A DNA stretch of 63,756 nt, filler included, from Trichosphaerium sp. ATCC 40318 (lineage: Eukaryota > Protista > Tubulinea): assembly GCA_038496445.1 (NCBI GenBank). It is 3 parts of 3 records of this genome, joined end to end, with 100 filler letters (N's around TTAATTAATTAA, not from the genome) between each part and the next. Parts side by side here need not be neighbours in the genome. Positions count along the whole stretch, not along the records: positions 23,039 to 45,226 come from JALMLS010000432.1; 2 more parts are not named here. One strand, written 5' to 3'. Each line of letters starts with the position of its first letter. The stretch's first letter is position 1. The position numbers and the translations under genes are program-made. The notes below the pieces were generated by a model. It saw only the letters and a list, made by a program, of their open reading frames with translations, did not search any database and was not told where the DNA came from. Of the stretch, positions 30,216-44,318 are shown in pieces.

Positions 30216-31382
30216 ACCGTTACTACGCAAAGGGTTTTAATTGGAAAGTTACGATCTTATTTGGTGCCTATCGTCGTGATTTATTTGGTTTGAAACACAA
30301 ATACATTGTTGTATCATTAGTTCACAACGGTTTTACCTGGTACAACATTATTCCATTCTTAATAGTTTACCTTTTGCTCACTTGGAACGTGAACAGGCAA
30401 CACAAGATGTAATGTTTATTTTTATGTTTACCAGAAGGAGTAACGTGGCAACAAACTGACGTAAACCATTACGTGAACAAACTTAGTTTTAAATCAAAAT
30501 ATTTTTTTCACCTGTACAAATAAAAACACTGTGGTTATGAGCTATAACTTCAATTATAGCCTACTGAGTAATTGATAAACAACCACCTCACTGCCACCTC
30601 TAATCAAGCCTACAATGTCATGTGACTTTGAGTTTGAACTCAATCAATGGTCATCGCTTAAGATCAGCAGTAAGAAAAATAAACAGTCTTTTACTTTTTT
30701 TTTTCAAAGGTAGTGAGAGCCTAGTGCCTGAACTGTTTGTAGATGTTGGAGCAAGTGATACTATGCTGAAGCTTGCCCATGCTTCTAGAGCGTTAAATGC
30801 TCTTGATTCATGTATTTACGGTATCCCAGTTCAACAGGATGATCTGGTGGAACCGTCATTTGTCAAACTGCTGGAATCACTTCAAAAAAATAAGAAAATA
30901 TGCAAAGTATTTTAATAATGTACTTTTGACACTTCAGTTCGTTGTCATCACCAACCAGTCTTTAGAATTAGATCCTTTGATTGCTTGTTTTTGTACAGGC
31001 TCTTTAAACCTCTTATGATACTTATATAATGGTTAAAGAAGCATTCAGGCTTGGTAGTTATCACGGTTTATAAAACATCCATGTGGTATTGAGTGGCTTG
31101 GTGTCTTTTTACAGATATTAGAATACACTGCACACGGAAGACAAGCTTATGGGAATGGCGTGTCACGACTGGTTTGTATGTGCAAGTTACAATCTGCCAT
31201 TCATATGCTGGCGTTATATGATCATGGTTTACTGTACCGTAAAGCTGAAGAAGTAGCATTTCTTGGAAAAAAAGTCAAGTATTTGTAAAACCATTTTCAC
31301 TGACTGTTTTTCTGTGCTCTAACTTAAATCCATTTCACAGCCTGTTTGTTTGTGCCACCACACAGAGCTAAGAAAACAAGTC

Positions 31383-31727
31383 ATGGCACAAACGCGTCCT
31401 TTAAATAATTCACTTCTAAAGACCACCACAATTGCGAACTTACCTGTTGAGATCATTTACGCTATTTTTAAAGAGGTAGCAACTGGAAAAGTCGCAATTG
31501 TTGCTCTACAAAGCCTACATAACCTACCAGTGTGTAAACAATGGCACACGATTGCTAAGGATGATTTACTATGGCGTGAGGTTTACAGTATCCATTACAA
31601 CCTGGAAAACAAAGACTACACAACTGGATATTTCTACCCTCCATTTTTCAAGTTTGAGATTCCCAGCCGTGCAATAGGGTACCTTCAGCGTCCAGGGTTA
31701 ATGAACAGTGCTGGAATAGTGGTGTAG
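31383..31727 (+). CDS. Intronless F-box protein (short, possibly a pseudogene)
   Basis: LPVEIIYAIF...VCKQWHTIAKDDLLWREVY F-box motif; early stop. Confidence 0.7.
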   Translation: MAQTRPLNNSLLKTTTIANLPVEIIYAIFKEVATGKVAIVALQSLHNLPVCKQWHTIAKDDLLWREVYSIHYNLENKDYTTGYFYPPFFKFEIPSRAIGYLQRPGLMNSAGIVV

Positions 31728-35498: not shown

Positions 35499-38400
35499 AT
35501 GGCAAAGCGAGACGCTCTAGTGCGAAGGTCACTCACACAAACTGATTTACAAGACTTTGAACTATCGTTTTGGTACAATTCACTGTACCTTGCTTTGCGC
35601 TACCATAATTCGCTAGGGACAAGGATAAACGGTTCGAAAATACTATCAGAAATAGAAAAGTCAGCTCTCCGCGAATAGCATGGCGTACGCGTTATTTTAT
35701 CTAAGTACATACGCAGGTTATAACGATAGCGTTATAGGCAACAAAAAGGAAGTAAGATCTGTATTTGGTTGGACGGACGTTCAAGACAACAAGGACGCTT
35801 CTTCACAGAGTAGCGGCGAAGAGAAAGAGCCAAAAAAGAAGGAGACGTTACAGGGAACCTTTTCTAATCAAAGCGATTTGCCTAAACTGCCAGTACCTTC
35901 GTTAGAAGATACTTGTAAACTGTACGTGACATCAACACGCGAATTCCCATCATGATGACACAAACACCCAATCATCGCTTTTTTTCGCTTCCTAAGCGCT
36001 CCGCTAACATTATTAAAGGTATTTGGAGTCTGTTAAACCGTTATCAACGATAGAAGACTTTATAACGACAAAAGCCGCTGTAGATGAGTTTATAGCGCCT
36101 GGAGGCGTAGGAGAAATGGTACCATAAGCGACAGGCATACCGGATAAACTTGTAACGCCCTTTTTAGCTTCAAAAAAAATTGGTTGCAAAAAGCCAAACT
36201 CGGTGTCCTAGCTGGCTTGAAGATTGGTGGGATGATAGTTATTGTGAAGGTAGAGCTCCCATTAGGTGCGTTGAACGCTTTGGTTCAGTCTGAAGAAAGA
36301 CTCACTCATTTGTTATTTTCTTGAAAGTTTTTTTAAGTTTTATTTTTTTTCTATCTTTAGTTGCCTGGAATCAACGTGTTGTGACCTGCAATCGAGTAAC
36401 CACAGTATCTTCTGCTGGGAATAAACTTTTGAGCTTCTACACTCTTCACCTAACCTTGAAAAGCATGATTCTTTAGTGTTTGTTTTTTTCTCTTAAACTT
36501 ATTTGATGCTTTAGTGTACACGTCAATTACTTTTATACTTTTGAAGATCAACCTCGTCCAGGTACCGTAGACTACTCAATTTATAGTACTAAAGTTAACG
36601 TCTATCGTAGAGGAACAAAATCAAGTATCACGAGCTGCAGGACTTCTTCATGGCGCATTGACATTCCGTCAAGAAATCGAAGCGAAAACATTATCACCTG
36701 ATTCTGAACGTGGTACACCTCTATGTATGAGTCAATACCCAAGATTATTCGCATGTTCTCGAGTACCTGGAAAGAAACGTGATCACCTCATCACGTATCA
36801 GAAAGAACCAATTGGTCGTGATTTCGGATCAAAAACAACGCAGTATGAATACTGTGACTCTAAACACGTGGTCGTGTTACATAAGGATAACTTTTACAGT
36901 ATGCGTGTATTAGATAAAGGATCTGTACGCTCTATATCGTACATAGAACAGTAAGACATTTAACAGAACTCAAAACAAACAAGGCCAAAGCTAATAATAT
37001 TTCTTCTTTAAATAGATGCTTGTCGTATATTTTAACCGATGCTCGTTCTCAAAAAACTCAGCTTCCTATTGGTACACTCACATCTGAAGAAAGAGATCAA
37101 TGGGCTACTGTAAGAGAAGATTTGATTGAGCATAGTAAGAAGAATGCCGATATATTAAAGGTTATACAGTCAGCTCTTATCATACTTTGTCTTGATGATA
37201 AAACACCTCAAAACGTTGAGGAACTCTGTCGTGTTGCACTTCACGGTACTGACCAAAAACTAATATTTATTAAAAAATCATTCTACTAATTGCACATCAA
37301 CACCTTTTACTGTCACGTGCACAGTGATCTGTTTTCGTGTTTTATGCTCTTGTTTTGTATTTATCTTTATATTTACTTTTGTTCGTTTAGGTGATGGCAG
37401 TAACCGTTGGTTTGATAAAAATCAACTCATAGTATGTCGTAATGGCAAAGCTGGTGTGGTATGGGAGCACGCATCCGCTGATGGAACATCAACTCTTCGA
37501 TTAGCTGATACAATGTATAAACACTGTTGCAAATATGGTTCAAAAGTTCCAAACACAAAGCCTCCAGCAAAACAAGACCGCCCAGAGAGATTACAATTCA
37601 AGTTATCCGAAGATATCAAAGACTCGATAAAAGCAGCATATCTTAAATACAGAGAACTCGTTCTTAATAATGCAACGTCAATGTTAAGGTTTACTAAATT
37701 TGGTGGAAAATGGATAAAAGAAAACAAAATGTCTCCTGATGCCTTTATCCAAATTGCTATACAATTAGCGTACTATAAGATGTTTGGTAACTGTTGCGCG
37801 TACGTACTAGTTTTACTCATAGTGAAGCATGATTTTGACAGGTAATGGTGCTTAGGACGTATGAGTCGGCATCAACAAGGACTTTTTTCCATGGACGTAC
37901 TGAAACTGTAAGAAGCTGTAGTTTGGCTTCTTTAGAGTTTGTAAAAAGCTCTTTTGCACCACTTCTAAGTTATGGTTTTGATAATAGACCATCACAATTA
38001 ACGCTGCTTAAACAAGCTGTTGAGTCTCATGTAGCATACATGAGAAAAGCAAAGAAGGTACGAAACTTTATTGAAAATTTTATTTCAAAACCAAAAATAC
38101 TTTCTTTGTTCTGTGGAGCCTTGTACAATATAATTTTCTTAAAGGGTATGGGAGTCGATAGGCACTTATTTGGTCTTGGTAAAATACTGGAAGAACTTCG
38201 AGCTAAAGGAGAAGGTAAGAAAACAGGATTGTTTTGTTTCTTGTCTTGGCTCACGATTGATTTTTTTAGACATTGAGGTTCCTCAGCTGTTTACAGATCC
38301 TAACTTCAAAAAATCAAGTCACTGGAAGCTTTCTTCTAGTCATTGTGGTTCACCTTCTTTAAGTGCTTTCGGATTTGGACCTGTAGTTACTAGAGGGTTT

Positions 38401-38953
38401 GGTATGACTTTTTTTTTCCGCTTTTTTTCTGACTTTTTTTTGTTCTCAACACAACAAACTATTCCCACCCGTTTAACTTTGTTTAGGTATTGGATACATG
38501 ATAAAGAATGATTCGATATCTTTTTGTGTTACAGGACAACTAAGCAAACACAGAGAAATTCTTATATCTAGTGAGTTATTCGCAAGCTTAGTAGAACAAA
38601 GTATACTTCACATGAACTCAATAGTTTTATCAAACCCAGAACACCAGGTACGCTGTGCTTTGAGTTCCAGCATTTGTGTTCGCCATCAACCCACATCTCT
38701 TGCACTTGGAGTTGTCCATTTTCATACTGTTCTTTGTTTTTACAACTACATCTTTTTAACGGACGCTTTATCAGATAGCTTGTTTTCAATGGTATGCTAA
38801 CTTCTTGGTTTTTTTTATAGATTCACGTGCCAAAGTCTTTAGAATTTACCCATCCTACTGGTATGTACTTCTTTTTAAAAATGGCATTGAACTTGAGTAT
38901 TAATGGATGTTTCCTTTGTAGTAAACTTGGCTCGATTCGCTTCAACAAACTGA
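35499..38953 (+). CDS. Carnitine/choline O-acyltransferase family protein
   Basis: LPKLPVPSLEDT, SWLEDWW, PLCMSQY, NRWFDK, catalytic EHASADG, SPDAFIQIAIQLAY, TYESASTRTFFHGRTET, GVDRHL, GFGPV. Start approximate. Confidence 0.93.
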
Positions 38954-39306: not shown

Positions 39307-41016
39307 TCAATGTTGATGTCTCGATTTTAATCCCATCTTCTTCACCAACAAATACCTTGAAAGTTCATAGCTCCAAGGTGCTGCATTGGTACCTTGCTCA
39401 TCTAGTAAGGACATATAGTAAAGAGCTTGTTTTGACACAACACCAGTTGTGAGAGCATCTATTATTCCCTTATCAATAGCATCATCACTATTAGCTAACG
39501 CTTCATCAACTTCAGAGGGATCACACTTCTGCCAATCCAAAATATAATCAAGGGCAGTCTTGCCTTCATGATTCTTTATTGTAGCATCAACACCAGACAT
39601 AACAAGCTGGAAAATCATTTGAGGATTAAAACTTTTGCAAGCAGCAATGAGCGCAGTGTCACCAAGAATATCTTGGTGGTTAGGTATGAAGTTTTTGTGT
39701 TTGCAAATGATTTTAGAAAATTCACCGTACTCTAATGTTTGATGTTTGTCATCAACCTCTGCAATCTTAAAAGCAATGGTCCGTCCATCTTCATCAGGTT
39801 CAAAAATATTGAGGTTTTCCCAATAAGGAATAATTGCTTCATCAAGTAGCAATTCATAATCCTCTCTAATAAACCACATCCAAAATATATCAATATCAAA
39901 CAAGTGCAATCCATTAACTAATATATCATATCTGGGACTATAGTGCAGAAAAGACCATCCTCTATTATCTCTAAGGTTAAAATCAAAGGATTCACATGTA
40001 TCAATGTTGTCTATTGATAAATCCTCCCCTATGTACATCAATACTGTTTTGCCAAAGTTATCTCTAAGGTTAAAGTCGATTTGGTGTTTTTTCACAGTGC
40101 TGTAGATTTTACTATATACCTCACCACTAGCACTCACCTCAGCCCTATCAGCTGCAACATGTAAAGGTGTCATACCAAATACATCAACATTTGTATAAAT
40201 ACTATTTCCATGAATCTTTTCTAGTTTCTTTAGTTTCTTGGTTAAATGACGTGGAGCGTGTTGAATCAATCCTGTGATATTACTGAACCTTTCATAAGCA
40301 AACTGGTTTGATCCATCTTTTAAAACATAACAATCATCTTGGTACAGGTCAACCTCATCTTCTTCGTCCTCTTGGTCACTACATACATATACCTCATCTT
40401 CCTTTGCATTTTCGTTACTATACTCAACGCCAAAAACCCTGCAGAATTCCTGACAGCTATCCCAGTTAATAGCAGTACTTATTGAATGCCGTTCTAATTG
40501 AGATCTTTGTAGGGTCAACTTCTCAACATCCGCATCTTTGATACATTCTGCCGTTTCAGAAAAGCACGTGAATTGTTTTATTATGTATGATTCAGCGCTT
40601 GTTTGAAGTAATAACAAGGCTTCTGGTGACCAACCAAAACCCCTTATCATAAGCCTGCTGATGCTAGAAACTAGTGTGCTAAATGCTGTGCTTTCAATTG
40701 CGAAGTTCTCTGGATGGTATGTGGTGTATTTAAAGTGTACTGGAACGTAATCAAACCAAAACTCCCGTATCGTTTGGTTTTTATAAAATGGGAACATCAA
40801 ATATATGTTTAACCGCTTGCAAAGTAAGACAAAGAAGCTGTCGGGAAGGTGTTGGATGTATTTGCGGAATCTATGGCAAGTTCGCTTCATTATGATAGGA
40901 ACGCGCACTGGGTTGCTAAAAACGAACAGTAGTAACGCTAGCATGTCATCTGGAAGCTGTTGAATATGATTTATGGGTGGTTCGTCATAAATACGCAAGC
41001 TTTTCACTTCAGACAT
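39307..41016 (-). CDS. Intronless F-box / histone-H3-like fold / ankyrin-repeat protein (569 aa)
   Basis: LPDDML..TCHRF F-box; residues ~95-170 resemble the H3 fold; acidic linker; ankyrin motifs GMTPLHVA, GKTVLMY, GDTALIAA, GKTALDY. Confidence 0.8.
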   Translation of the reverse strand: MSEVKSLRIYDEPPINHIQQLPDDMLALLLFVFSNPVRVPIIMKRTCHRFRKYIQHLPDSFFVLLCKRLNIYLMFPFYKNQTIREFWFDYVPVHFKYTTYHPENFAIESTAFSTLVSSISRLMIRGFGWSPEALLLLQTSAESYIIKQFTCFSETAECIKDADVEKLTLQRSQLERHSISTAINWDSCQEFCRVFGVEYSNENAKEDEVYVCSDQEDEEDEVDLYQDDCYVLKDGSNQFAYERFSNITGLIQHAPRHLTKKLKKLEKIHGNSIYTNVDVFGMTPLHVAADRAEVSASGEVYSKIYSTVKKHQIDFNLRDNFGKTVLMYIGEDLSIDNIDTCESFDFNLRDNRGWSFLHYSPRYDILVNGLHLFDIDIFWMWFIREDYELLLDEAIIPYWENLNIFEPDEDGRTIAFKIAEVDDKHQTLEYGEFSKIICKHKNFIPNHQDILGDTALIAACKSFNPQMIFQLVMSGVDATIKNHEGKTALDYILDWQKCDPSEVDEALANSDDAIDKGIIDALTTGVVSKQALYYMSLLDEQGTNAAPWSYELSRYLLVKKMGLKSRHQH

Positions 41017-41695: not shown

Positions 41696-42520
41696 ATGAA
41701 CAGGGAATACACGGAATATACCCCAATCGAGCTTGTAGCGCTTCCAGTAGAAGTAATAGTTCATATCCTCAATCAAGGAACATTTACACTCCTTGCAGCT
41801 CAAACGTGCCGCTTATTACGAGATATCATTCACAAGTTCATTGGCTATGGCGAAATCAGTGTCAAGAGCGAAAGCGAAGTGACAATTCTTTCTGGAAGTC
41901 CTTTACTGAAGAACACAGCTATATTTCTTTGTAACTATGATACAAAGAACAAGCATCTGCAGCTACTTTCGGGCATACACACTATTAACCTATTGGACTG
42001 CCAATCAATAACAGATGAAGGCATCAAAGCTTTAGCATGTGTACATAAAATCGATTTGTCAATGACAAATGTAACAGATGAAGGTTTAAAGGCAATTGCA
42101 GGTGTACACACTATCTCATTATATGAATGCCATAAAATAACAGATGAAGGCATCAAGGCTCTGGCAGGTGTACATGAAATCAATTTAGTACAAACAAATG
42201 TAACAGATGAAGGTTTGAAAGCATTGACTGGTGTACACACTATTTGGCTATGTTTGAACAGATTAATAACAGATGAAGGTGTTAAGGCTTTAGCAGGAGT
42301 ACATACTATTGACTTGTATGAGTGCACATCAATAACAGATGAGGGTATCAAACCGTTGGCAGGTGTACATGAAATCAACATAGCACGTACAAAAGTTACA
42401 GATGAAGGTTTAAAGGCAATTGCAGGTGTACATACTATCTCATTTTCTGGTATGACAAAAGAGCACATCAAGGCATTGACTGATGCCCACCAGATTACAG
42501 TGATGCTAGGCTATGGTTAG
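41696..42520 (+). CDS. Intronless F-box / LRR protein
   Basis: LPVEVIVHIL..QTCRLL, then alternating 21/22-aa (I/V)TDEG(I/L)KALAGVHxIxL repeats. Confidence 0.88.
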   Translation: MNREYTEYTPIELVALPVEVIVHILNQGTFTLLAAQTCRLLRDIIHKFIGYGEISVKSESEVTILSGSPLLKNTAIFLCNYDTKNKHLQLLSGIHTINLLDCQSITDEGIKALACVHKIDLSMTNVTDEGLKAIAGVHTISLYECHKITDEGIKALAGVHEINLVQTNVTDEGLKALTGVHTIWLCLNRLITDEGVKALAGVHTIDLYECTSITDEGIKPLAGVHEINIARTKVTDEGLKAIAGVHTISFSGMTKEHIKALTDAHQITVMLGYG

Positions 42521-43829: not shown

Positions 43830-44318
43830 TCAGGTATTTAACATAATGAACAAATAGTGGACATACAAAAATTGACGTAGTGCAGTGGCAGCCTTTGTAC
43901 TGTTTCCAAAGATACTGTACTTTTTAGCAACACGGAGCATGGCCTTGTTTAGATCTTTGATGGTATTGAGCTTAGTGATATAGTGGCGACGACAAGAGCA
44001 AGAGTAGTCCAATTTATCATTGAATAAGTCTTCTATGTCATGTAGTTTTGATAATTGTACAGAGGACACAATTGAGCGCTTGGACGCAAGTAGTTTGCCT
44101 GTGTGGAGATAAATAGTTAAATCGTTTGTGGTGCCCAACTTTGGGTTCTTTGGCTGGTTTGTATGCCGATTAGAATTCTTTCTGGCAATATCAATGTATA
44201 GAATATGCTCTGTGCATATGTTGTAGCTTTTTTGCATAATTTCTGAAATCTCACTGTATATGTCTGAATTAATAGCAGCAAGGGCAGTAATTTTTTTTAG
44301 TAGCGTTAGGTTGTCCAT
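43830..44318 (-). CDS. Unknown protein, paralogue of 44405-45131 (second exon probably extends to ~43660)
   Basis: 162-aa ORF; shares IEDLFND.L.Y...LN..MLRVA.KY..F.......L.QFL with its neighbour. Confidence 0.55.
   Translation of the reverse strand: MDNLTLLKKITALAAINSDIYSEISEIMQKSYNICTEHILYIDIARKNSNRHTNQPKNPKLGTTNDLTIYLHTGKLLASKRSIVSSVQLSKLHDIEDLFNDKLDYSCSCRRHYITKLNTIKDLNKAMLRVAKKYSIFGNSTKAATALRQFLYVHYLFIMLNT

Follow-up and report, generated by a model that had tools for sequence, protein, structure and literature searches.

We found that the window, a stretch of 63,756 nucleotides (filler included) from Trichosphaerium sp. ATCC 40318, carries an uninterrupted 569-aa open reading frame (ORF), running from ATG to stop at 39307..41016 on the minus strand within the piece 23039-45226, and that this ORF is, judged from its sequence, an orphan gene: protein-coding, without introns and restricted in its taxonomic range. 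Of all the domains that have been proposed for the 569-aa protein, the ankyrin repeats alone appear solid; an F-box near the N-terminus is plausible, and a likeness to histone H3 and CENP-A over 47 residues is borderline. We give a probability of roughly 0.55 to the reading that the gene encodes a lineage-restricted, acidic ankyrin-repeat protein, perhaps an SCF adaptor, with a helical linker that is locally and marginally H3-like. As the evidence stands, the gene mainly exemplifies an orphan, fast-evolving repeat protein.

The region is coding now or was so very recently, since a 1.7-kb open frame is unexpected by chance in DNA of 37% G+C. The composition of the ORF is like that of its surroundings (34-42% G+C along the piece), and neither strand at 39307..41016 shows another notable overlapping ORF. 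The initial annotation dealt with positions 40507-40965, which correspond to aa 18-170 of the 569-aa protein, and the peptides that it quoted are all found in this frame (NFAIEST from aa 104, IIKQFT up to aa 150 and CIKDADVEK at aa 158-166). It also described the gene as intronless beside intron-containing genes, and this held: the 569-aa ORF needs no intron, whereas the adjacent choline/carnitine O-acyltransferase gene (36658-38511, plus strand), whose 3′ end converges on the ORF, is broken up into five or more exon ORFs that together cover Pfam profile positions 112-546. Thus, the genome does have (short) introns. Elsewhere in the piece, a 162-aa ORF at 43830-44318 (minus strand) is without a Pfam family. 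Searches for tRNA genes and Rfam families gave no match.

The ankyrin-repeat region comprises aa 278-512 (39481..40185, minus strand), and here the earlier assignment of ankyrin repeats was confirmed. In Pfam searches, Ank_2 matched aa 443-492 with an E-value of 9.2e-9 (36.2 bits, with a cut-off of 27.3) and Ank_4 also scored above its cut-off (25.6 bits vs 22.7). Only about aa 442-492 of the region score above the Pfam gathering score, and five repeat starts of the form G-x-T/S-x-L can be read from the sequence at aa 281, 322, 353, 452 and 485; the region thus has both a match above the gathering score and the tandem units of ~33 residues by which ankyrin repeats are recognized. A 20-nt direct repeat inside the ORF (39965-39984 and 40058-40077), with copies 93 nt apart and 95% identical, shows that one ankyrin unit, that with the ...DFNLRDN... 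motif, was duplicated recently.

The protein is otherwise nearly alone in the collections that we searched. An exhaustive HMMER search with aa 1-200 among 1.84 billion (1.84e9) representative proteins found no relative at E<=0.001, and a word search of 5.8e9 proteins returned a single match, which is confined to the ankyrin part (E 0.006). Metagenome contigs likewise yielded no relative. Looking up the exact 569-aa protein returned no record, and there is no paralogue of it within the piece 23039-45226. Only one public run has contigs with short stretches of the ankyrin part, at 95-99% identity.

We considered whether the N-terminus contains an F-box, as had been claimed. An F-box-like pattern is visible by eye at aa 21-54 (LPDDML ... 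TCHRFRKYI, that is, LP-x-D/E followed by C-x-x-F), within a basic stretch (aa 18-70, pI 10; 40807..40965, minus strand) that no model confirms. Neither Pfam F-box (PF00646) nor F-box-like (PF12937) matched at E<=10, whether the query was the whole protein or one of its parts (aa 1-260, aa 1-80 and aa 16-60), and a phmmer search with aa 1-80 matched none of the PDB sequences. A neighbour named as an F-box cluster in the ESM-feature search (score 0.77) has 55 of 256 features in common with the query, which is chance level. Thus, the part of the claim that stands is the by-eye pattern, and the Pfam and PDB searches do not support it.

The setting of the gene bears on this question: the same 22 kb contain two further ORFs with F-box-like domains. 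The first is an intronless 274-aa gene (41696..42520, plus strand), divergently oriented to the 569-aa ORF, with a weak Pfam match to F-box-like (E 0.006) and a strong one to LRR_6 (E 8.5e-22). The relatives that come closest to it are protist transcripts from MMETSP (44% identity) and an FBXL14-like protein of Acrasis kona (30%), and it is a member of a multi-copy family, since diverged copies of its 24-aa repeat unit are numerous in run X1. The second (31350..31727, plus strand) is an ORF of 125 aa whose F-box-like domain is clear (PF12937, E 2.7e-8); it is probably an exon belonging to a third F-box gene in these 22 kb. The 569-aa gene is like the LRR_6-containing neighbour in being intronless and lies among F-box-like ORFs, although BLASTP detected no pairwise similarity between its product and the two neighbouring F-box-like domains. 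In overall plan, the 569-aa protein is like F-box proteins with C-terminal repeats (FBXL, FBXW), having an LP-x-D/E and C-x-x-F pattern, a linker and then repeats. Unlike in FBXL- and FBXW-type adaptors, the repeats are ankyrin repeats and not LRR, WD40 or Kelch repeats.

From this arrangement, the most likely reading is that the 569-aa gene is a fast-evolving member of a local crowd of genes for F-box-type substrate adaptors. In an adaptor of this kind, Skp1 may be contacted through the N-terminus and the target would be bound by the ankyrin repeats; the 260 N-terminal residues would be helical, made up of the F-box-like pattern, the H3-like linker and an acidic tract. This tract, which had been noted earlier and is readily seen in the composition, lies at aa 202-228 (40333..40413, minus strand); over aa 195-235 there are 16 D+E and only 2 K+R (pI 4.05).

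The main proposal of the initial annotation was that residues ~95-170 form a histone fold of the H3/CenH3 type, and we examined this segment at length. The likeness is concentrated in aa 104-150 (40567..40707, minus strand), which align without a gap on H3 residues 59-105, that is, on helix 1, on loop 1 and on helix 2 for the first two thirds of its length, with 12-13 identities in 47 residues (~28%). In this alignment, all of the buried H3 positions I62, F67, L70, V71, I74, F84, A88, L92, Y99, L100 and F104 are occupied by identical or similar residues, and an S-P-E helix cap falls exactly at the start of H3 helix 2, so that helix 2 begins at the same place in both. The segment has the pattern common to H3 and CENP-A (PF00125), F..LV..I ... 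A.L.LQ..AE.Y[LI][VI]..F. The tryptophan that had been remarked upon is indeed at an H3 phenylalanine position (W129 on F84), where CENP-A has W.

Searches of this segment converged on the same family, and tools given no hint of a histone also recovered the likeness. A phmmer search with aa 85-185 against all PDB sequences gave 13 matches at E<=10, all of them H3 or CENP-A (best E 0.12, 16 bits; range 0.12-1.9 for the core aa 104-150), and all 13 alignments place aa 105-150 on helix 1, loop 1 and helix 2, ungapped with H3 and with a 2-residue gap with CENP-A. When aa 1-260 were used as the query, the same H3 and CENP-A matches were obtained at E 0.56-1.4, together with an unrelated integrase at E 0.26. 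We also scored the segment with an H3 profile made from 26 distinct sequences, which we retrieved from IMG/VR contigs with the help of a short, degenerate DNA pattern and from which metagenomic CENP-A-type sequences were left out to avoid human contigs. The excised segment aa 80-185 scored 14.2 bits, a value reached by none of 5000 shuffles (best 8.9). Similarly, the BLOSUM62 local score of the core (45) was attained by 1e-4 of 20,000 shuffles. Finally, in an ESM-Atlas feature search with aa 88-182, the top three rows were Histone (PF00125) clusters and the ten best named matches all belonged to the Histone family or clan; the Histone clusters have 169-172 of 256 features in common with the query, where the mark for true family members is 170, at a cosine of 0.77, which shuffled proteins often reach. 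The PDB matches, the H3 profile and the ESM neighbours, three partly independent sequence measures, all point to the same family in the same register, at borderline strength.

Several observations limit this likeness. The Pfam Histone family did not match at E<=10, and hhalign of the single sequence against the 26 H3 sequences was weak (P 0.007, probability 5%). The whole protein scored only 10.2 bits against the H3 profile, compared to 9.1 bits for the best of ~2,800 non-histone six-frame segments; thus, the separation of the segment from noise rests on its post-hoc excision. Moreover, the likeness ends beyond aa 150. The H3 profile leaves aa 151-185 unaligned, and these residues show no likeness to the conserved H3 stretch 105-131, which takes in the end of helix 2 together with loop 2 and helix 3. 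In particular, CIKDADVEK, which had been placed on loop 2 and helix 3, could not be maintained there (local BLOSUM62 score 18, shuffle mean 16.9; P = 0.36), and the helix N region is also at chance level relative to H3 in local alignments against shuffles (P = 0.81). Of the proposed fold, then, a borderline likeness to H3 and CENP-A over ~47 residues (PDB E 0.12) stands, while the rest of the fold does not. There are further differences from H3 and CENP-A: the DNA-contacting residues R63, K64, R69, R72 and R83 of H3 are E, S, T, S and G in the 569-aa protein, the segment has a pI of 5.2 vs 9.5 for H3 over the same span, and it is without a basic tail and embedded in a 569-aa multidomain protein.

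The H3 profile scores correspond to a per-sequence P of ~4e-5 when the whole protein is scored and ~3e-6 when the excised segment is. Multiplied by the number of families, this gives roughly 0.1, in agreement with the PDB E-value; applied to all the ORFs of a very large by-eye scan, it predicts many chance cases. A by-eye likeness of 47 residues at 28% identity, coming from a very large scan, is therefore at a level that chance can deliver.

We turned to structure prediction, running AlphaFold without an alignment and keeping H3 sequences out of the input, since imposing a histone fold in this way would be circular. The single-sequence models were of low confidence, with pLDDT 36 for aa 1-260 and 58.7 for aa 94-183. 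In these models, helices are predicted at aa 102-127, 131-153/161 and 164-177, the last of them in the predicted helical continuation of the core (aa 151-177; 40486..40566, minus strand), which has no measurable H3 similarity. The low-confidence helix lengths are compatible with H3 helices 1, 2 and 3 in the ungapped register (~30 and then ~13 residues for helix 2 and helix 3). Foldseek (PDB), VIA-align and Atlas searches with the two models (pLDDT 36 and 58.7) retrieved generic helical hairpins only and no histone. The models are too poor to refute a histone fold because there were no homologues from which to build an alignment, and without homologues structure prediction cannot settle the matter. 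The initial annotation had named the lack of any histone-fold match or predicted fold as the outcome that would speak against it; what we obtained was mixed, with weak and exclusively H3/CENP-A sequence matches and Histone neighbours in ESM space, and with no Pfam Histone match and no predicted fold.

The reading that survives best beside our own takes these matches at face value: aa 104 to ~177 would be a genuine histone fold that derives from H3 and is highly diverged, or at least its helix 1-loop 1-helix 2 half, which no longer binds DNA and now acts as a module for binding proteins. The module might pair with H4, an H4-like protein or a viral histone, or might be recognized by H3 chaperones, and the partner, once brought to the ankyrin/F-box scaffold, might be ubiquitylated or sequestered, with the acidic tract helping to hold basic partners. 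Such a module would account for PDB matches that are exclusively H3 or CENP-A, for a segment score that no shuffle reached, for a core score that few shuffles reached, for ESM neighbours that are all PF00125, and for the conserved hydrophobic core positions and helix 2 N-cap. The compatible helix lengths, at the low confidence of the models, agree with it, as does the position of the acidic tract directly after the segment, an arrangement seen in many histone binders. However, an H3-derived module is harder to reconcile with the silence of the Pfam Histone model, the dissimilar C-terminal third of the fold, a whole-protein score barely above the best decoy, the weak hhalign result, the failure of either predicted model to match a histone, and the acidic character of the segment compared to H3. 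In addition, the segment was chosen by eye in a huge scan, a way of selecting that favours chance likenesses, and there are no relatives in which conservation could show. We therefore consider an H3-derived module a tentative alternative, with odds clearly against it, and think it more probable that the H3-like stretch is a helical hairpin whose likeness to H3 is due to chance or convergence than that it is a working histone fold.

The fuller proposal, in which an H3-derived half or whole fold set in an F-box/ankyrin scaffold with an acidic tract acts as an H3 mimic, capturing H4, histone chaperones or viral histones for an SCF ligase, seems to us a shade more doubtful again, at about one chance in four. 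It does have a parallel in known biology, in that SCF-type ligases are linked to H3-variant biology: the yeast F-box proteins Met30 and Cdc4 target CenH3 for degradation, but adaptors of the Met30/Cdc4 type recognize CenH3 via WD40 domains and without a histone-like segment (PMC7032732; PMC8424319). In the literature and protein collections that we searched, we found neither an architecture of F-box, histone fold and ankyrin repeats nor a histone-like segment inside an F-box protein. If the histone fold were true, this would be the first histone mimic inside a ubiquitin-ligase adaptor, and it would provide a handle on how a protist keeps free histones in check or defends itself against histone-encoding giant viruses.

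Another reading dispenses with both N-terminal domains. Here the gene would be young or decaying and lineage-specific, its N-terminal half would contain neither an F-box nor a histone fold, and only the ankyrin repeats would be functional, or the gene might not be expressed at all. The 569-aa gene was present in none of the public RNA runs, aa 1-260 have no family match in Pfam, PHROGs or PDB, and both the low pLDDT of the model of this region and the lack of relatives are as such a gene would have them. Yet the 260 codons upstream of the ankyrin repeats stay open at 37% G+C, which argues for coding constraint, the LP-x-D/E ... C-x-x-F/W pattern looks to the eye like that of an F-box, and two neighbouring genes carry detectable F-box-like domains. 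For these reasons, we regard a domainless N-terminus, or a decaying gene, as unlikely. The SCF-adaptor role that we favour for the ankyrin protein is inferred.

A retro- or virus-mediated origin, which had been suggested for the gene, found no support: nothing marks a retrocopy or mobile-element insertion, as the stop is not followed by a poly(A) tract, flanking duplications are absent and the composition does not shift, and nothing marks a viral source, as the N-terminal half has no relatives in viral contigs or phage records and no match in PHROGs.

In the course of assembling the H3 references, we noted that several of the IMG/VR contigs (L009, L012, L013, L024, L025 and L031; L017; and L001), which are of giant-virus type, carry H3 genes that are themselves unusual. 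One group of these genes has an insertion in the N-terminal tail that contains WNGQDWV. In L017, the H3 fold lies behind an acidic extension of ~190 aa, and in L001 there is an insert of ~20 aa in H3 loop 1; this insert may be an intron that has not been spliced out.
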